NCBI GenBank assembly: GCA_946965045.2
Contig: OX337239.1
Coordinates: forward strand, 1,426,001-1,490,000
Origin: Epithemia pelagica
Taxonomy: Eukaryota > Protista > Bacillariophyta
Reading direction: 5' to 3'
DNA length: 64,000 nucleotides
Part shown: one piece after another, positions 3,901-29,662 of the stretch
How positions within the stretch are numbered: position 1 is the stretch's first letter
Layout of the letters: every line of letters begins with the position of its first letter
The notes under the pieces: generated by a model
The model's input: only the letters and a program-made list of their open reading frames with translations
Database searches by the model: none
What the model was told of the DNA's origin: nothing
Translations under genes and position numbers: made by a program

Positions 3901-6571
3901 ACGTACTCCTATTGAGGCTCTCACCGGTCACCCTCCCGACATTTCGCACCTCCTGTTCTTTCCCTTCTGGGATGAAGTCTACTATCGTGTTGACCCCTCC
4001 GAACCGTCGTCTGGTCCCTACCCTTCTTCGACCGATGAGAAACTTGGCCATTGGGTTGGTTTTGCTCACAACGTTGGTGATGCTTTTACATGGAAGATTT
4101 TGTCTGCTGACAACCATATCCTCTACCGTTCCGCTGTTCGCCGTGTCGCTTCCACTACACCCAACCTTCGTGTGGATCGACCTTCAGGGGAGACGTCTCC
4201 GAAAGATGACACTGATAAGCAGGCTGACACTGTCTTCATTCGCAGTAAAAGTGAAGATCCATCCAAACCAATGCCTACAATCGATTACGAAGACATGATA
4301 GGACGCACTTTCCTATGCGACACTGAAGAAAATGGGGAGCGTCATCGAGCACGCGTTGTCAAACGAGTTGTAGATCTTAATGAAGAATCACTCAAGCAAG
4401 AAGAACGCATCAAGTACATCTACCGCAAGACAAATTCTGACGTTGATGAAATGATCTCTTATAACCAGTTGATGGAGTATATTGAGAGGGACAATCAAGC
4501 GCAGACCTCGGGAGATAATTTGTTCCGTTTCAGGGATGTTATTGCACATCAAGGCCCACTGTCTTCAACCGACCCGGATTATAAGGGGAGTAAGTATAAC
4601 TTGCTTGTGGATTGGGAAACTGGGGAGACAACCTATGAACCACTCTCCCTTATTGCCAACGACGACCCAATCACCGTTGCCATATATGGAAAGAAGCATG
4701 GGCTCCTCAACGAACCAGGATGGAAACACCTGAAACGCTACGTCAAGACGAGTAAACGCCTGATACGTGCTGCAAAACAATCAAGGATCAAACAAGTACG
4801 TCGATCAGTCAAGTATAAGTTTGGATTCCAAGTCCCTCGAGATTACGCCGAGGCTGTCAATCTTGACAAACAAAATGGTACCACAAGGTGGCAAGACGCA
4901 ACTGAATTGGAACTGTCTCAGATACAATCATATGAGACATTCAAGGACCATGGGAAGGCCATCTTCACAAATGGCAAGGTATCAAATGCACCTGAGGGAT
5001 ATCAAAAGATTCGAGTGCATCTCGTTTTTGATGTGAAACATGATGGTAGGCACAAGGCACGACTTGTTGCAGATGGACACTTGACGAAGGAACCTGTGGA
5101 AACGATCTACTCTGGAGTTGTTTCTATTCGCAACCTACGAATTGCTTTATTCCTTGGATCTCTGAACGATCTAGAAGTATGGGGAGCAGACATTGGGAAT
5201 GCGTATCTTGAAGCATTGACTGGGGAGAAGTTATATATTGTGGCAGGACCCGAGTTCAAGGAGCTAGAAGGTCACATCCTCATCATCTACAAGGCCCTCT
5301 ATGGTCTCAAATCTTCAGGCGCACGATGGCATGATGTCCTTTTTGACGTCCTCACCGATATGGGTTTCTCACCAAGCAAGGCAGATCCTGACATTTGGAT
5401 GAGAAAAGCACCTGGGGAGGATTGCTACGAATACATCGCCGTATATGTGGATGACTTAGCCATCATAGCTACTGACCCTGGAAACATTTGCAAAGTCTTC
5501 AAGGAAAAGTACAACTTCAAGCTTAAGGGAGATGGACCTATTGACTATCACCTGGGATGCCGGTACACCAAGGACCCTGACGGAACCCTAGTCTCTGATC
5601 CACGCCGATACATTAGCAAAATGATGGACACCTTCGAACGTATCTTCAAAGAGAAGCCCAAGAAGGCTAAAACCCCTCTCATTGCTGGTGATCACCCGGA
5701 ATTGGACGACACCGAACTCCTTGATGAAGAAGGTACACAGCACTTCCAGACCTTGATTGGACAGCTTCAATGGGTGATTACAATTGGTCGCTTTGATGTT
5801 TTTACTGCTACGATGACCCTTTCCAGGTTCCGCGCAGCTCCAAGACAGGGACATCTCAACAGAGCTAAACGCATCTATGGATACCTTTTCAATCTTTCTG
5901 ATGGTGCAATCAGATTCCGAATCGGAGAGCCCGATTTCTCAAGCATTCCAAGTCAAGACTTTGATTGGAGTCGTACGGTCTATTCAGATGCCAAGGAATA
6001 CATCCCTCATGATTGCCCAGAACCACTTGGACGATATGTGACGACAACGCACTATGTTGATGCTAACCTTATGCACGACATGATCACAGGAAAGTCTGTA
6101 ACAGCCATCCTGCATCTCTTGAATGGGACACCAATTGATTGGTACAGCAAACGACAGAGCACTGTGGAAACGGCAACATATGGATCAGAATTTGTGGCAG
6201 GAAGGACAGCAGTCGACCAAATCACTGAATTACGGCATTCACTTTGTTACCTTGGAGTAACAATCAGGGATCGCAGTTATCTGTTTGGAGACAATCGATC
6301 TGTGGTTGTTAATGCAACAATGCCTCATTCTATCTTGTCCAAGAGACATCATCTCCTTTCATATCACCGGGTACGAGAAGCGATAGCAGCGCAATACGTT
6401 GCATTCTATTGGAAGGATGGGAAGACCAACCCTGCCGACATCCTCAGCAAGCATTGGGAATTTGCAACTATTTGGCCTCTACTCAAGCCCCTATTGTTTT
6501 GGAGAGGAGAAGTTCAAGATCTCTACGAATCCAGCGATGACAAGGCTGAACCAACGAGCTGTGGGGAGTAG
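905..6571 (+). CDS. gag-pol: Gag-Pol polyprotein (gag, aspartic protease, integrase, chromodomain-like segment, RT, RNase H)
   Basis: Protease LIDRGANGG; integrase D-D-E (ATDSIF, LISDGG, KAENRY); RT ADIGNAYL and YVDDLA; RNase H YVDANL, SEFVA, GDNRSV, NPADILSK. No stops or frameshifts. Confidence 0.97.
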   Translation: MEPTTPTTPEFNTNQSISDQEVFDHITQVLFNFSKERVDVLVKWMHHHAFDDILSIIEHMAIDPEKNMDSMTKYKSGKQMHDLHVNTSQQIKLLAHWFRQTSIDIQGIPSKATWMNLTKAEFDLWRINTDFRSGSPINDPVSPMKSPSHLTSPKSFSTTSAASQSQLDLTAFKKGTKRDAMAYETFKDERYYDTFWRTFKTTAKAQGLSNVLDFRYKPPTNDTYVTELFQEQQIFLYSVLVRIIQTDQGRAYVREHEHDEDARAVLQKLHTLHTKSDLAKREVLRLTNYISNLRLDDTWRGSSRQFLLHFQDKLRLLDNLVDLSDRIPDHTRMTFLMQAVEKVPDLRRVKILDNVVNTKSGAKSLCYQSYFSILMDAAYDHDQVTQSSATGCRRSVKQHEQHETQHDIEGSLQEDDAYQINNTNVQDDNTASPKASLPRDLWFKLPEDARKMIVEYNKNVQASTPSPRKVQQHSLDIDPEPDPDPGQDVFDDLDNPTYPQDDSDPATHLIHQAMTSTDLNHPASDLSNVLSNAASKTSKKVSFKQNEHKQKVHMTQYMFSRKSTYTGNQLIDRGANGGLAGADMRILSKTGRNITIVGIDNHELTGLPIVTCAAKFETNDGPIVGIFNEYAYYGKGQSIHAPCQLEHYGLSVDERSVKVDGKQRITTLDGRALPLCIKDGLAFIHSLGIPSDDDMDRLPQIIFTSPSTWDPSVLDHTHSDSQHDASTTWHQVATDGSMARYPYDTYGEYTDRVVCNLNLLLDLPYDHGPDNTTYFSIYADANGEDPTLQHASVHRRYVEEHDWKQFRPFFGWQSEEVIADTFKHTTRHANVIFDCDTLKKHFKARNPILNLPRRHEPVATDSIFSDTPAVDHGGKVAQIFVGRDTLVTDIYGIKSTKQFVNTLQDNIRMRGVMETLISDGGSSLISHKVKDILRTLLIGEYRSEPYHQHQNKAENRYQTVTRMTNAIMNATGCPANVWLLCLEYVCDLLNHSSSHAHSGRTPIEALTGHPPDISHLLFFPFWDEVYYRVDPSEPSSGPYPSSTDEKLGHWVGFAHNVGDAFTWKILSADNHILYRSAVRRVASTTPNLRVDRPSGETSPKDDTDKQADTVFIRSKSEDPSKPMPTIDYEDMIGRTFLCDTEENGERHRARVVKRVVDLNEESLKQEERIKYIYRKTNSDVDEMISYNQLMEYIERDNQAQTSGDNLFRFRDVIAHQGPLSSTDPDYKGSKYNLLVDWETGETTYEPLSLIANDDPITVAIYGKKHGLLNEPGWKHLKRYVKTSKRLIRAAKQSRIKQVRRSVKYKFGFQVPRDYAEAVNLDKQNGTTRWQDATELELSQIQSYETFKDHGKAIFTNGKVSNAPEGYQKIRVHLVFDVKHDGRHKARLVADGHLTKEPVETIYSGVVSIRNLRIALFLGSLNDLEVWGADIGNAYLEALTGEKLYIVAGPEFKELEGHILIIYKALYGLKSSGARWHDVLFDVLTDMGFSPSKADPDIWMRKAPGEDCYEYIAVYVDDLAIIATDPGNICKVFKEKYNFKLKGDGPIDYHLGCRYTKDPDGTLVSDPRRYISKMMDTFERIFKEKPKKAKTPLIAGDHPELDDTELLDEEGTQHFQTLIGQLQWVITIGRFDVFTATMTLSRFRAAPRQGHLNRAKRIYGYLFNLSDGAIRFRIGEPDFSSIPSQDFDWSRTVYSDAKEYIPHDCPEPLGRYVTTTHYVDANLMHDMITGKSVTAILHLLNGTPIDWYSKRQSTVETATYGSEFVAGRTAVDQITELRHSLCYLGVTIRDRSYLFGDNRSVVVNATMPHSILSKRHHLLSYHRVREAIAAQYVAFYWKDGKTNPADILSKHWEFATIWPLLKPLLFWRGEVQDLYESSDDKAEPTSCGE

Positions 6572-22264: not shown

Positions 22265-23701
22265 TAGCAAACGAGGAGCACCAACAGAATCGAGCAAAAA
22301 CCAAAACGAAACCACTCTGTTTTCTCTCTCTCTTCCTTCTACCAATCTACCTATATTTGTCGGCATCTTGTGCCTGACTCGGCCATCATGGAACCAACCC
22401 ACAGACTGTTTGCTTGCTTTTGATTGCATCATTCTCAGAGACTTCCATGCCACTAGGCCGAAGAAAGTTGCCATACTCCGAGTAGCTACTCGAATCTCCC
22501 TAGAATGCTTTCTCTACTGGACTGATATCTGATAGTCTTGGTAGGAGTAAGTACTGGTTTTTAACTACTCCTCATTCTTTCAATCCCATTCGAAAGTACG
22601 GCATCGAAGAGGAAAGCTATGGCAATGGCCTCATCCCATACTGCTATGGCACAAAGGCCGCTGTAGTAGTGAATCAGTCATGACTCACTGGATCACGGAC
22701 GGACGACGGACATTGAGTCTGAGTCTTGCGAAATGGTTTGACTCCTGAATTGGAATGACGTCTACAGCAGCTGACATGGTTGAACTTGCGGGAGCCAATG
22801 AAAACGTCAGAGATCATGAAATTTCGCGTTACGTGGTTTGACGTAGCATCCCAACATATATGCGCCGTATTCAAACTACGGAAAACTAGATGATAGGGCG
22901 AGTCAAATGGAAATGACGACATTGACAAACCATCTACGTGGCACGTTTTTCAATGACGTTCCCGGCCGCGTCTCCGAGCGTTTGAATAGGTGCAATCTGC
23001 AATGTACTCTATTGTATCTCTGTTCTCTGTCTCTCGGCAATTTGATCCTTTTGGCAAGAGGCTCAACTCGATCGGCTTGTTGGTTGTTGGTACCTCTTCT
23101 CTTTGTCGTTTCGTGTGTTGTTGGTGTTGTTGGCCCAATAGTGCCGGAAGCCAATACGCACTTGCGCAAGTGGTGTCGCAATTCGTAGCACACACACACA
23201 TCAAAATCATCTCATCAGGTCTTTGCTCTACGAGCGCAAAGAGGGAACAAGCAGGACCAGCCGGCCTGGTGCTGTCTTTTTGCCAATTGTGCAACTCGTG
23301 TGACCAATCTCAAACGAGGTCTCGTCCTTGGACACAGCCTTTTCCTTGTTGCTCTGGCATTGCCTTTTCAGTTGGGGGAGTCGTTGTTTGCATTGAACGT
23401 TTGGAAAGAGGAACACGCTTAGTAGTTGGTTCTCATCATCCCCAGTTCAAGGATTGGAATACGAAGCCTTCGCATTCGGTGTTGAGGCGGAACGAACCAA
23501 CCAACACAAACACAATTGCGACACACGTGAAGAACTGATTGTGGTTTTTGAGGAGAGAGAGTGTAGTTTGGTCCATTCCTTATGTGTCTGTGCGTAGGGA
23601 CGGGTTGACTGGATAGCATTATCGACAGCAACAACCTCTACTAGAGTCATTACTATCACGATTGAGTGAGTGAGGGGAGAGACGTTTTGGGTTTGAGAAG
23701 C

Positions 23702-26140
23702 ATGGATTCGCATACCCACAGTAACAACAATCATCACCCTCCTCCTCTCCCGGAAACCACCACTTTGGATCATCATAACCACAAAAACAACAATAGCAAT
23801 ACCAACAATCTTGCGACTGCCAGCAACAGCAACAACAACACTACCAAAACCAACCCCACCTCCTTGGAATCCAATACGGTTCCTCTTGCCACCACGGTTG
23901 TGCCCCCTCCCACGAGTGCTGTGAAACAGAATGACAGTTCCATCCTCCAAACACAACAACAGCAGCAACAACAACAAGAATTGGCAGAAAACATGAACCG
24001 TGCCTTAAACACGGCAGCAGCATCCGCAGCTCCTCCCTCGGCCTTGACTCCCCTCGCAGCGGCTCCCCCCTCCACCAGTCTGGTACCCACTCTGTCTACC
24101 GGAGCCGCTCCTACGGCCACCACTCCAGCTGCCACTGCTGGCCTGGCGGCTCCCACCTTGGCTCTTCCAGCGACGGTACCACCGTGGTTTTCCACCGCAG
24201 CTGCGGCAGCCGCCTATCCAGCCTTGATTCAACAAGCCTTTCAACAACAAGCGGCCGCTGTGGCAGCCGCAGGAGGAGCTCCCTCCACAACAGCATCCAC
24301 TGCTGCGACTCCCAACTTTTTGTTGCCTTCGACGGCCGCCATGAATCCAGCCGCTGCCTTGGCCATTGCGGGAGGAGGGGTGGTCTTTCCGGCGGCGGCG
24401 GCCGCCGCTGCTGCAGCCGCCTTGGCGGCTTCGGGTCAAGCCACCGCTCCACCCTCGTTGGATCTCTTGGCGGCCTCCACGGCGGTGACCAATCCTCTGG
24501 TACCATCGGTGAAACCCACGACTTCGGCCGTGACGACTACTACCACCAATCATAATGGATCCAATGGCAAACGAAAAGCACCCACCAACGCACCCTTGGC
24601 TCCACTTCCCTCCATCAACGGCAAAACTAGTAGTACAACGGCAAGCACGGGAGAACCGCTCGCCAAGAAACCAGCCACGGCTGCCACACGTCCCCCCGCC
24701 ACCGCCACCACCACCACCACGACTGCAAACCACAACAACCACAATAATACGGCTGCCGCGTCTTCAGTCGTTTCCTTGTATTCCACCAGTGACACGGCGG
24801 CTCCTCGAACATCGACCAGTACGAGTAGCTCCAGTTGTGTCACCGCCACCACGCGGAGCAGTCCACCACCACCACCACTAGCATCCTCCTCCACAACGGC
24901 CTTGGCCGTGCCACCGGCACCTCCTCCCCTCTTGGCGTCTTCGACTTCTTCTACGGCGGTGGGAGTAACGAGTGGGGGTGCCCCGACGGCAGGTGTCCCT
25001 CCCCCCACCAGCACGGCCGATTGGATGATGGAGGGCATGGATTCCATGTTGGAGTTTGGAGGAGCTTCGTCCGCGGCTCTGGGGAATGGGGGAGACTTGG
25101 GGGCCGGGGTACCGCCCTCGGAACGACGGCGGTACGAACGCAACATGCGCGAACAGCAACGCTCCTATCGGATCAGTCAACAAATTAAACAATTGCGCGA
25201 TGTCTTGGAAGAAAACAAGATTCCGTTCAAACCCAACAAATTTTCCATTTTGGTCAGTGTGGTGGAATACATTAAGCAGTTGCAAAGCCGATCCATTATG
25301 CTGGATTCCGAACATGCCCGGTTGATGGATACGGTCCGACAAACGACCGAACTCGTCCATCAACAACAGCAACAAAACAATAATAATAATAAGAGCAATA
25401 GTGGATCGGATGCGGCGGATGAAGAAGAAGAAGAGACGGGTGACGAAGGAATGGGGAATTCCAACAAGGGAGGCTTTGCACTCACAACGAGCAATGGAAA
25501 CAGCAAGAACCACACAAGTACTAGCACCGAAGGACCCTTGGATTTGTTTTTGTCATCCTCCTCTTCCTCGGCCTTATCGTCGTCCCCTCTGTTAAAGGAT
25601 ATGTATCCACTTGTGTTTGCCAAGTGTCCCGCCGCCTTGGGGATTGCCTCCTTGGACGGACGCGTGTTGGCTTGCAATTCCTGTTTTGAAGGTTTGTTGG
25701 GTGTTCAACAAGATCAAGTCTTTCAACAATCCATGTTTGTGTACATTCGCAACCATCAAGATATTTTTGAAGCCATGGCCGATTTGCTGAAACGATCCTC
25801 CGCGGCCACTGAAGTCCCCCAGTCCACCACGACAGCTGGAGCAACAGCACCTCCGACCACGGCCCTTCCACCCAGCACGGTTCCGGGTGGGGGCACGGCC
25901 ATTTACGTGGCTCCTCCCGAATCCTCCGACAACCACCACCTCAAGACAAACAACAACAAGGCGACGTTGAATGCCTCGTCGTCGTCTTTGTCGGCGCATC
26001 ATATTTTGTATTGGTGTGGGTCGGTCATTTCTCTGCATGGCAAACGGCTGGCCTTTACCATTTCCTTGACCAATACCAACAACGGAGATCCCAAGTACTT
26101 TGCCCTGTCCGCTGCACAAGTCGAACCGGAACAAGACTGA
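23702..26140 (+). CDS. bHLH-PAS transcription factor, about 812 aa, long low-complexity N-terminus
   Basis: bHLH RNMREQQRSYRISQQIKQLRDVL...NKFSILVSVVEYIKQLQ; PAS-like VFAKCPAALGIASLDGRVLACNSCF. Confidence 0.88.
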   Translation: MDSHTHSNNNHHPPPLPETTTLDHHNHKNNNSNTNNLATASNSNNNTTKTNPTSLESNTVPLATTVVPPPTSAVKQNDSSILQTQQQQQQQQELAENMNRALNTAAASAAPPSALTPLAAAPPSTSLVPTLSTGAAPTATTPAATAGLAAPTLALPATVPPWFSTAAAAAAYPALIQQAFQQQAAAVAAAGGAPSTTASTAATPNFLLPSTAAMNPAAALAIAGGGVVFPAAAAAAAAAALAASGQATAPPSLDLLAASTAVTNPLVPSVKPTTSAVTTTTTNHNGSNGKRKAPTNAPLAPLPSINGKTSSTTASTGEPLAKKPATAATRPPATATTTTTTANHNNHNNTAAASSVVSLYSTSDTAAPRTSTSTSSSSCVTATTRSSPPPPPLASSSTTALAVPPAPPPLLASSTSSTAVGVTSGGAPTAGVPPPTSTADWMMEGMDSMLEFGGASSAALGNGGDLGAGVPPSERRRYERNMREQQRSYRISQQIKQLRDVLEENKIPFKPNKFSILVSVVEYIKQLQSRSIMLDSEHARLMDTVRQTTELVHQQQQQNNNNNKSNSGSDAADEEEEETGDEGMGNSNKGGFALTTSNGNSKNHTSTSTEGPLDLFLSSSSSSALSSSPLLKDMYPLVFAKCPAALGIASLDGRVLACNSCFEGLLGVQQDQVFQQSMFVYIRNHQDIFEAMADLLKRSSAATEVPQSTTTAGATAPPTTALPPSTVPGGGTAIYVAPPESSDNHHLKTNNNKATLNASSSSLSAHHILYWCGSVISLHGKRLAFTISLTNTNNGDPKYFALSAAQVEPEQD

Positions 26141-26979: not shown

Positions 26980-29662
26980 TCACGATGCCAAAAAGATGTG
27001 TTCCTCGTCTAGTATCAGTTCGGGTTCTGGTAACCCTCGAATGCCAAAGGGCAAGACCAGGGAATACAATCCTCCTCCATCGGGACCACGTGTGGTAATA
27101 AAGAGGGTATTCAGTTCCGGACCTCCAAAGGTACAGGAGGTAGGACTCTTGACAGGCAAATGCACGACCAAGTCCACTCTTCCCGATTCGGGATGAATCC
27201 GCACCACACGACCGGCTCCACTCAAGGCTGCCCAAATAAATCCCTCAGCGTCTGTGTACGCCATATTCCCGGGAAAGAGAGAGACAGAGAGAAACATTGA
27301 CGAGATCGACCAGTCAAACAAAAAAGTTTGTGAGGAGGAAAAAACTGTACACTATACACCAATCCAACTCTTGGCAATGTAAAGCTCTAGTGTTCGTTCC
27401 GCAGCGACACACTGCTTGATACGTACCTACTTGCGCTCCATCCGGACCTCCGTCCCATTCACATGGCATGGTCCACAAAAGACGTCGATTGGACAAGACG
27501 CTTCCTGTTGTGGTATCATGGCGGTTACCAGTCACGGCGGCGGCATTGCCATTGTAATCAAAGGCGTATAGTTTGCGTGTGGGAGTATCACAAAAGTACA
27601 CAGTCTTTCCCGACGGCGCAAAGCACAGGCAATTGGAGACTCGGTAGGGTGGAACGGTTAGTTTGGTCGTTGCATCATGATTCACTCCCAGTCGGTACAA
27701 GTGCGTACTGGGATCGGCCTGATTCACCGGCGATCGATGATAATTGTTGTACATACCAAAGACTAAATTCCGACCCTCTCGGTCGACTCGTCCATCGTTG
27801 GGACGAGTGGGAAGACGTGGTTCTGGAGGTGGACACAACCACGTTTGTTGGGGCGCAGTGGTTCCCGAACCATGGGAGGCGTGGTTGTCGATTTCTTCCT
27901 CCTCCTCGGTGGCAGCAGAAGGGGTTACCAAATCAATGTGCCAAAACCCATCTTCACAAGCGGCCAAGAGTGTTTGCGACGACGTTGACGACGATTCTTG
28001 GGATGGTGCCAAGAGGGCAATGCATCCAATGGTATTCGTTCCACCAGTAGTACAAGCAACCTTGGTACAAAAGGCTGGATCATGGAGATTCCAGGTCCAA
28101 ATCAAGCCTTGTGGGGCATCAATCCAATGTAAGGTTTGATCTCGGACAGACCATACCGGACTTTCTCCCAAGGTATTGGAGGTGGGTAGACATTCGCGAG
28201 CCGTAAATTCGTGGGGAGAACGCTAAAGGCCCGATGACAAGGAACACGCAAGTTGCAACAGAATCGAGCAAACACAAACAAAAAGCATGACTAGGTTAGA
28301 TGACCAAGATTTCAACAACCAACCACAGAAATCCATGGATCGATATCTTTTTTACAAGTGTCGTTGTTGTTGCATTTCTGGTTGATGAAATGCCTTCATT
28401 CCTCAAAGACATAAATACAAAGGGACGACGGACTAGTAGGAGGCGCTCACCTGCGGCTCTTGGGAATAGAGTTTGGAGGGCAAGATGGACGCTCCATGAA
28501 TGATTCGGGTAAAGGCATCGGCCGACAAGGAGAGGGACGAGTCGAGTACCATGCCGTCGATATCTGGTAGAGACGTGTAGTCGGTAATGGTACGAGGTGA
28601 CACATTGGTGTTGCTGTTGGAATCGCGACACCACAAGAGTAGTCGAGGTATGGTGGAAAGATCCGTGTCGAATACGTCGACTCGCAGTGCTTCCAACCAC
28701 TCTGGTATCTCGGACAGTGACATACTCGATGCAGGTTCCACAGCTACGGAAATACGTTCCCAGTCCCGTTCCTGAACGACTCCTTGCTTGAGAACCTGGG
28801 AAAGATCATCTGAATGTGAGACACAGAGCACGAGTTGCAACCGCTCGTTGTGTGCCAAACACGTAGCCAGTTGACGACCCAAGTTTTGGACCATGTCGCT
28901 TTTGTCCTCGTCGTCGTCCACTTGGAGTGTGAGTAGCACATGATCGCATCCTACGGATTGTACTTGCAAAATCCAATTTGGATCGGAGGATGACGACAAG
29001 TGTGCCCCCACATGAATGCCACTTCCTTGCAAGCCATCCACGACATGTGAGACAAAGGGCAGAGGTGGAATCACCATGATTTGGACGTCTGGGGAAGTAG
29101 AATGATGATGATGGGGAGCCAAATTGGCGGCCAAGAGTTTGCAAACATTGATGGCGGCACCCAAAGTGGCCGGTTCGGTTTGCCAGTCGCCTACAATCAA
29201 TAGGGGACGTTGTCGTTGTGGCGTCACAATGGTTGCTTGCAATACTGACGACGTCGTCGTCGTTCTCTTTTGCAGATTGCTATTGTTCCGGTTCTTGTTA
29301 TTATTGGTACTGTGATCGTCGTTGGTTGCATGGTCCTCTTCTTGATCTCGATTCCGCCAAGCCCATTCTCGAGCTAAATCCTGAATATTCGTCGAGCTGC
29401 TCGGGCTCTGGTACAAACCAGTGTCGTAGGTAATGGCCCTTGGTGTCGTTTGATGTGGGAGCCTAAAATCAAGTGGCGGTTGTGCAAGTCGTCGTCGTCG
29501 GGGTCGTGTGTTTGTGCGGACTTGTTGTGGTAAAGGATACCATGCAAAGGCACGGATTCTGTCAACGACGAGCACGAGCGACAAAAGGACAAGCAGCACA
29601 GCGCGACGACAAATACCGAGCCTTACTGGCAGGTGCTTCTGCCAAAAATCCATGGTAGACAT
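26980..29662 (-). CDS. Predicted 3-exon fusion: presequence + degenerate triosephosphate-isomerase-like barrel + SMP-30/gluconolactonase (SGL) propeller, about 759 aa
   Basis: Exons 29662-28451, 28222-27427 and 27251-26980. Intron 1 CAG|GTGAGC...CCTTTAG|CGT (228 nt, phase 0/0); intron 2 G|GTACGT...ACACAG|AC (175 nt) restores GAQVDAEG. SGL motifs LGESP, RPNDG, VSN and GPDG are present. The domains are secure; the fusion is inferred. Confidence 0.7.

Follow-up and report, generated by a model that had tools for sequence, protein, structure and literature searches.

Do positions 26,980 to 29,662 of a diatom contig carry two neighbouring minus-strand genes, one of which has no way to start, or a single gene whose parts have been read separately? 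The question is raised by a 64,000-nucleotide stretch of the Epithemia pelagica genome (GenBank assembly GCA_946965045.2, contig OX337239.1, positions 1,426,001 to 1,490,000), hereafter called the window, in which an apparently complete open reading frame (ORF) related to triosephosphate isomerase (TIM or TPI) lies ahead of a frame for an SMP-30/gluconolactonase-like (SGL) domain. We consider it highly likely that the two frames belong to one spliced fusion gene, and very likely that this is a three-exon nuclear gene for a 759-residue plastid-type protein, in which a catalytically dead but conserved TIM barrel is joined to a working lactonase. The protein would consist, in order, of a signal peptide with an Ala-Phe plastid-import motif, the degenerate TIM barrel, a linker of about 30 residues and a six-bladed SMP-30/gluconolactonase domain. 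What is new is the pseudo-TIM and the linker intron, as a variant of a fusion family that is known from databases and uncharacterised.

The coordinates given in an earlier note on this DNA, namely those of the ORFs, the TAG at 28223-28225, the phase-0 donor at 28451/28450 and the product of about 759 residues, could all be found in the minus-strand sequence. The donor, CAG/GTGAGC, lies between 28451 and 28450, five codons ahead of the in-frame TAG (28435-28433) that terminates the apparent 409-residue ORF and that would itself be inside intron 1. The SGL frame is closed upstream by the TAG at 28225-28223, which is preceded by a pyrimidine tract (65%) and is the proposed acceptor of intron 1. 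No in-frame ATG occurs between this TAG and the conserved LGESP strand, and the first in-frame Met of exon 2 comes only after about 150 residues, by which point the Glu ligand of LGESP has been passed; therefore, the SGL exon is unable to start by itself. The ATGs within 28223-28450 run into a stop or lie in another frame. Given the TAG and the stop at 28433, the conserved linker is kept by no phase-compatible donor-acceptor pair other than 28451/28222. For intron 2, no open GT..AG combination other than the donor G/GTACGT (27427/27426) with the acceptor CACAG (27252/27251) makes the SGL homology continuous (GAQV/DAEGFIW). The resulting three-exon model (29662-28451, 28222-27427 and 27251-26980; see Table 1) yields 759 residues. 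The exons have a GC content of 0.51-0.52, whereas the introns (0.42 and 0.45) are close to the 5' flank (0.43); both introns carry stops in all frames. At the local base composition, the chance of a 439-codon open frame is P ~9e-9.

Over its entire length, the 759-residue protein was collinear in alignment with P0006, which is a complete, intronless gene of 663 residues on metagenome contig L010. Exon 2 opens with RSPHEFTARECLPTSN-LGESPVW in the window, where P0006 has NTPREMTARESVSTKN-LGESPVW, and the same linker is found in two single-ORF fusions, P0003 (PRPKELTAKEVVHTKN-LGESAVW) and P0020 (RNPIELTAIECVPVRN-LGESPVW). Since this homology begins just after the proposed acceptor, exon 2 starts inside a homologous interdomain linker, whose length is normal: 18 residues precede the E(F/L)TA motif in the spliced product, as compared with 13-16 in the uninterrupted fusions. 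The conserved linker motif P-x-E-L/F/M-T-A-x-E is present at the start of exon 2, and collinearity of the spliced model extends to P0003, P0020 and P0064. Membership of the window gene in the TIM-SGL fusion family by domain order and linker depends on the inferred splice; read in this way, the window shares with the family the domain order, the linker, the SGL blocks and a predicted signal peptide that ends in a small residue followed by Phe. Unlike P0006, P0003 and P0020, which do not have intron 1 (for the latter two as judged from gene calls), the window has an intron in the linker. P0003 and P0020 show ORF breaks at the point of window intron 2.

The arrangement recurs on a second diatom contig, L001, which was reached via P0002. 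There, too, the SGL frame follows the TIM-like part and is without an ATG, and both intron positions are shared with the window. The intron-1 donor of L001, CAGGTGAGCG (10 nt), is identical to that of the window and again stands just ahead of a stop; because the rest of this tail is poorly conserved, the shared stretch looks like a splice signal. The introns themselves were 0.46 identical between the two contigs versus 0.43 for a shuffled control, and a direct DNA alignment of intron 1 from the window and L001 was misaligned and showed no conservation. Note that intron 2 of L001 (7588-7870) is apparently of the GC-AG type (TAG/GCAAGT ... CATATAG/AT), and that the window has GT-AG (G/GTACGT) at the same position. 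In the TIM-like exon of L001, one base is missing at 5870-5880, between ..GQVSVS and LGCDFVLLG..., so that the frame shifts by 1 nt; past the break, the frame is open for 184 codons and TIM homology is kept. The break may be an indel of the assembly or else a lesion of very recent date; an error in assembly accounts for the open frame better than damage of long standing would.

We then consider the two halves of the protein separately, beginning with the lactonase. Pfam SGL (PF08450, gathering cut-off 26.3 bits) was detected above its cut-off in both exon 2 (5.4e-28, 98.7 bits, profile 1-179) and exon 3 (7.9e-17, 62.1 bits, profile 191-244), that is, over the whole propeller. All four ligand positions, Glu424 (LGESP), Asn546 (RPNDG), Asn601 (VSN) and Asp665 (GPDG), are kept, and in regucalcin (4gn7, 3g4e) and the Smp-30/Cgr1 protein 7plb their blocks have aligned counterparts in GESP, NDG, SNG and PDG; the intact ligands that the earlier note had proposed are thus seen against regucalcin and 7plb alike. 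We take these four residues to be equivalent to the metal/catalytic residues Glu18, Asn103, Asn154 and Asp204 of regucalcin, respectively. The ligand blocks are invariant among the diatom fusions, and exon 3 is 67% identical to P0006. With its lactonase residues intact, the C-terminal domain is a putative working enzyme, most likely one that depends on a divalent metal and hydrolyses sugar-acid lactones in the plastid. The window domain thus resembles SMP-30/regucalcin and bacterial sugar lactonases (3g4e, 4gn7, 7plb) in its Pfam match and in the aligned Glu, Asn, Asn and Asp, and the similarity to solved lactonases is remote (phmmer E: 5e-7 with exon 2 by itself, 2e-25 with the SGL half of P0006). 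Unlike SMP-30/regucalcin, it has long Ser/Thr/Glu-rich inserts between blades and stands behind a TIM-derived domain and a plastid presequence. The nearest solved relatives of the P0006 SGL half are equally distant (~1e-25), and the substrate is therefore not deducible from homology.

The TIM homology of exon 1 appears secure through intermediates, because the exon 1 ORF matches P0003 with an E value of 9.7e-18 (phmmer/HMMER) and P0003 in turn scores 2e-84 on PF00121. Within a family reference of 121 members, each of the TIM motifs is kept in 113-120 relatives. In the window, AGNWKLNP reads VGDWQTEP, with Asn replaced by Asp159 and Lys by Gln161, and LGHSERR reads LTLQVDDD, in which His is lost and Leu246 and Gln247 occupy the His-Ser site. 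The loop 6 motif AYEPVWAIGTG is two residues shorter (AVEP--ASSMS) and retains Glu309-Pro310, whereas YGGS (loop 7) and GGAS (loop 8) are lost, reading NSNT and DSSL, respectively. Accordingly, of the catalytic Asn, Lys, His and Glu, only Glu309 remains, unlike in the TIM-SGL fusions, which keep NWK, GHSERR, YEPVWAIGTG, YGGS and GGASL where the window has only Glu-Pro. The TIM part of L001 is intermediate, with Lys changed to Asn, His changed to Ala and YGG kept; since L001 shares catalytic losses, the inactivation predates the split between the window and L001. Judged by these residues, the TIM half of the window is catalytically dead, a pseudoenzyme domain. The dead barrel of the earlier note thus stands, with the catalytic Asn, Lys and His and three phosphate loops lost and with a predicted fold that is TIM-like.

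Divergence was strongly asymmetric between the two halves. The window and P0006 are 28% identical in TIM and 56% in SGL, and the corresponding values for P0003 and P0006 are 69% and 60%. The mean TIM/SGL distance ratio was 6.97 for the window and 3.95 for L001, as compared with 1.19-1.79 for 27 others. In separate maximum-likelihood trees of the two domains, the TIM end branch of the window was 9.5 versus a median of 0.36, and the window and L001 were sisters (SH-aLRT 100) inside the diatom clade on the SGL tree. Between the window and L001, identity at codon positions 1, 2 and 3 of the TIM-like part was 0.47, 0.63 and 0.34, respectively, and 48 of 91 conserved TIM-like residues use different codons, suggesting that the TIM-like half is under purifying selection with synonymous sites saturated. 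An AlphaFold2 model of residues 145-404, built on a 22-row alignment dominated by true TIMs so that fold retention is partly assumed, gave a predicted local distance difference test score of 84.8, a predicted template modelling (TM) score of 0.85 and eight strand-helix units. When the model was compared with the PDB by Foldseek, the top 50 matches were all triosephosphate isomerases (TM 0.63-0.73, identity 14-19%). The barrel is therefore predicted still to fold as a TIM (beta/alpha)8 barrel, and it resembles triosephosphate isomerase (PF00121, EC 5.3.1.1) in homologous sequence and predicted fold, unlike that enzyme in having neither the catalytic Lys, His and Asn nor the phosphate-binding loops.

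The fusion itself, on the evidence of database sequences, is not new. An exhaustive HMMER search with the 409-residue ORF gave 39 relatives; a word-index search with the same ORF returned only the ORF itself and P0002, and the length window of that search would hide fusions. Long single ORFs with a strong Pfam TIM match (~1e-80) followed by SGL were found in P0003, P0006, P0032, P0020 and P0026. A search with P0006 gave 3,078 proteins at E <=1e-20, and PF00121 and PF08450 occurred in one protein in all of the best 120 clusters, which were examined for Pfam domains, so that the architecture is present in at least 120 clusters. Annotated members include proteins of Nitzschia inconspicua (675 aa, P0064), Seminavis robusta (706 aa, P0134) and Chaetoceros tenuissimus (659 aa, P0115), and further members come from Cylindrotheca fusiformis, Pseudo-nitzschia multiseries and the haptophyte Prymnesium parvum (599 aa, P0170). 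Complete ORFs with both domains are also found in MMETSP transcriptomes, indicating that the two domains lie on single mRNAs in these relatives. A GC-rich subgroup groups with a Pelagococcus protein (pelagophyte-like contigs). The family is thus widespread in diatoms and occurs in pelagophyte-like contigs and a haptophyte as well, and the TIM and SGL homologs are not always separate, an architecture that the earlier note had proposed to look for. That note knew of no characterised TIM-lactonase fusion; full-text literature searches likewise found no paper describing or characterising one, but the architecture is neither hidden nor rare. Most of the fusion proteins are named "triosephosphate isomerase" in databases, and some "sugar lactone lactonase YvrE". 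A paper on a carbohydrate model of P. tricornutum gives only TIM-GAPC3, UGP/PGM and G6PDH/6PGDH as fusions.

Within this family, the window gene would be a local ortholog; both halves normally look catalytically competent there, and the pseudo-TIM variant appears confined to the lineage of the window and L001. Some fusions (P0151, 33.8 bits; P0166) have, ahead of TIM, the Pfam motif DPC4_N, the N-terminal motif of diatom pyrenoid component 4, which hints at a pyrenoid association in some diatoms. P0029 has a weak DPC4_N match ahead of a stand-alone TIM, and the motif was not found in the N-terminus of the window protein. In addition, P0014 and its cluster members, which belong to the same TIM subfamily, have TIM followed by two cupin domains (Cupin_2 and an EutQ-like Cupin_3) in 618-631 residues.

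A signal peptide combined with an ASAFAP-type motif is the known import signal of diatom plastids. By eye, the window protein has a hydrophobic core at residues 21-33, followed by RIRA/FAW, and relatives show NTSA/F, ASA/F, VNA/F, VSA/F and similar forms. A crude pattern (hydrophobic core plus a small residue followed by an aromatic one) was fitted by 73 of the 89 full-length members. The signal peptide and Ala-Phe motif of the earlier note can thus be read in the window and recur in most of the relatives, suggesting that the window protein is probably plastid-bound.

In the genome as a whole (60.5 Mb, 23 contigs), this is the one locus with TIM next to SGL. The same genome has an intact stand-alone, multi-exon TPI with a signal peptide and SYA/F, as well as further intact TIM loci. 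It also has a separate, stand-alone SGL paralogue with its own ATG (G000:C6:2700316-2700960; L008, 1498-2880, minus strand), which is extended at the N-terminus by about 130 residues and has each of the four ligand blocks. A TIM match at G000:C1:5638483-5639208 (L004) lies in a 604-codon open frame and is a possible TPI-GAPDH fusion of the stramenopile type.

These observations can be put together as follows. In the lineage of the window and L001, the isomerase half would have lost the catalytic Lys and His, and the window copy would additionally have lost Asn, loop 6 and the phosphate-gripping loops. Decay of the fused TIM may have been possible because an intact plastid-type stand-alone TPI is present elsewhere in the genome. 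The barrel would supply the start codon and the targeting peptide and would probably be a folded structural partner for the lactonase; it may have stayed open and conserved because the lactonase needs a start codon, a presequence and a foldable N-terminal body.

Several points weigh against this interpretation. The public runs that contain the locus, three from one study, are all genomic assemblies, in which it lies on one colinear contig with no joints, and the splice is accordingly one that we infer; collinearity with intronless fusions and the introns and donor of L001 speak for the single spliced gene claimed in the earlier note. The Pfam TIM match of exon 1 is weak (E 0.0033, 17.4 bits against a PF00121 gathering score of 20.1 bits), and the fold model carries the partial assumption mentioned above. 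The SGL domain of the window is itself about twice as diverged as that of other members (mean distance 1.59 versus ~0.8), and the locus gives no clue to the lactonase substrate. Targeting was judged by eye and by the crude pattern. Furthermore, a genuine frame break in L001 would cut the lactonase of that species off from the upstream ATG.

Two separate genes, with the TIM-like ORF translated alone to 28433 and the lactonase made from its own transcript whose first exon or promoter lies inside 28223-28450, seem quite improbable. An in-frame ATG at 28336 is a candidate start, opening a hydrophobic stretch of 37 codons that ends at the TAG, and a 69-nt mini-intron (CTA/GTCATG to the TAG acceptor) would then be needed; the public runs are all genomic and leave room for such a transcript, and a retained intron 1 would in any case give a TIM-like-only product. 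However, the required donor GTCATG is weak, the gap is only 210 nt, and L001 has neither an equivalent ATG nor conserved sequence there, its intron aligning no better than shuffled sequence. Moreover, the sequence that directly follows the acceptor corresponds to the interdomain linker of the single-ORF fusions, the CAGGTGAGCG donor is identical in L001 although the tail around it is poorly conserved, and nothing would hold an unneeded dead ORF open over 404 codons (P ~9e-9). Still less credible, in our view, is a decaying locus: this genome would be losing the ancestral fusion, TIM would survive as a pseudogene remnant and no lactonase would be produced any more. The extreme TIM divergence in the end branch, the frame break in L001, the stop five codons past the domain end and the second SGL paralogue with its own ATG would fit this explanation, but all three window exons are open, and the locus retains the four ligand positions along with most conserved blocks, its SGL identity to P0006 being about that of P0003 to P0006. 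Since the window and L001 diverged, both halves have been under selection, as the codon positions show, and the long open frame with TIM homology past the L001 break is better explained by an assembly error.

A different kind of alternative accepts the same spliced gene and assigns the barrel a specific new role, as a ligand sensor, a plastid or pyrenoid docking module, or a regulator of the lactonase; we regard this as doubtful, though less so than the two explanations above, and a barrel acting as metabolite sensor, in particular, is speculation. Purifying selection does continue on a catalytically dead domain, the window and L001 both retain Glu309-Pro310 and several family-specific helices (KLLAAN, PPLPF, SGIHVGA, SLPDIDG, ADAFTRII), and a pyrenoid-protein N-terminal motif precedes TIM-SGL in some relatives. 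However, loop 6 and the phosphate-binding loops, which would serve a triose-phosphate-like ligand, are gone, the window copy has a shorter loop 3 stretch, in TIM the chief dimer contact, and the window protein is without DPC4_N; a simpler explanation of the selection is that the enzyme behind the barrel needs an N-terminal part that stays in frame, can fold and allows import. A broader possibility, which we hold only tentatively and think unlikely, is that TIM-SGL is a conserved plastid enzyme pair of secondary red algae, perhaps pyrenoid-associated in some of them, with the lactonase acting on an unrecognised plastid sugar-lactone, a side product or intermediate of plastid carbon metabolism, and with the pseudo-TIM being a selected docking or regulatory module in this lineage. 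The three-exon gene with a dead, structurally retained barrel and a putatively working lactonase remains the reading that we favour.

A parallel is the mitochondrial TPI-GAPDH fusion of stramenopiles, in which an active N-terminal TPI is joined to GAPDH, the enzyme of the next glycolytic step (PMC3527533; PMC2173943). As in that fusion, the TPI domain of the window is N-terminal, follows a putative organelle presequence and precedes a second enzyme in one polypeptide. Unlike TPI-GAPDH, the window has a lactonase partner with no obvious pathway link, plastid-type targeting and a dead TIM.

The features of the locus are collected in Table 1. An NCBIfam search added nothing, and a promoter/terminator scan showed nothing, its models being bacterial and irrelevant for a eukaryote. 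Ahead of the barrel, at 29290-29390 (minus strand, residues ~95-115), the motif (E/Q)DLAREWA(W/L)RNRD is kept in the window and L001, and it occupies roughly the site of a conserved (V)WY(D/E)DS(F/L)T in other family members. The convergent neighbour at 23666-26140 (plus strand) is a long ORF in which, by eye, a bHLH-like stretch (ERRRYERNMREQQRSYRISQQIKQL...) is followed by a PAS-like region, both preceded by long Ala/Thr/Ser/Pro-rich low-complexity sequence.

Table 1. Features of the TIM-SGL locus, in coordinates of the window.
Feature	Position	Strand	Basis
Apparent stand-alone TIM-like ORF (409 aa, ATG start)	29662-28433	-	ORF list and sequence
Proposed exon 1 (404 codons): ATG, presequence, conserved DLAREWAWRNRD motif, low-complexity stretch, degenerate TIM-like barrel	28451..29662	-	
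Predicted signal peptide, residues 1-38: hydrophobic core AVLLVLLSLVLVV, end ..RIRA, then Phe39	29549..29662	-	Read from sequence
TIM-like (beta/alpha)8 domain, residues ~151-392	28487..29212	-	Alignments, AlphaFold2 model, Foldseek
Proposed intron 1 (228 nt, GTGAGC...CCTTTAG, phase 0)	28223..28450	-	GC 0.42, stops in all frames
Proposed exon 2: interdomain linker (RSPHEFTARECLPTSN) and SGL blades with ligands Glu424, Asn546, Asn601, Asp665	27427..28222	-	Pfam SGL
Proposed intron 2 (175 nt, GTACGT...CACAG, phase 1), splitting GAQV/DAEG	27252..27426	-	SGL continuity
Proposed exon 3: final SGL blades and C-terminus, stop TGA at 26982-26980	26980..27251	-	Pfam SGL

The corrected gene model replaces a 409-residue orphan ORF and a start-less lactonase with one 759-residue product, and places it in a fusion family that is common in diatoms, has plastid-type presequences and is filed in databases under the name of its TIM half. 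Since the TIM half is dead but conserved, the lactonase would be the indispensable part of the protein, and the barrel would have a role beyond catalysis. A dead yet conserved TIM copy is, in effect, a natural separation-of-function allele for an unstudied plastid enzyme family, and it opens a direct route to the role of a sugar lactonase in the plastids of major marine primary producers.

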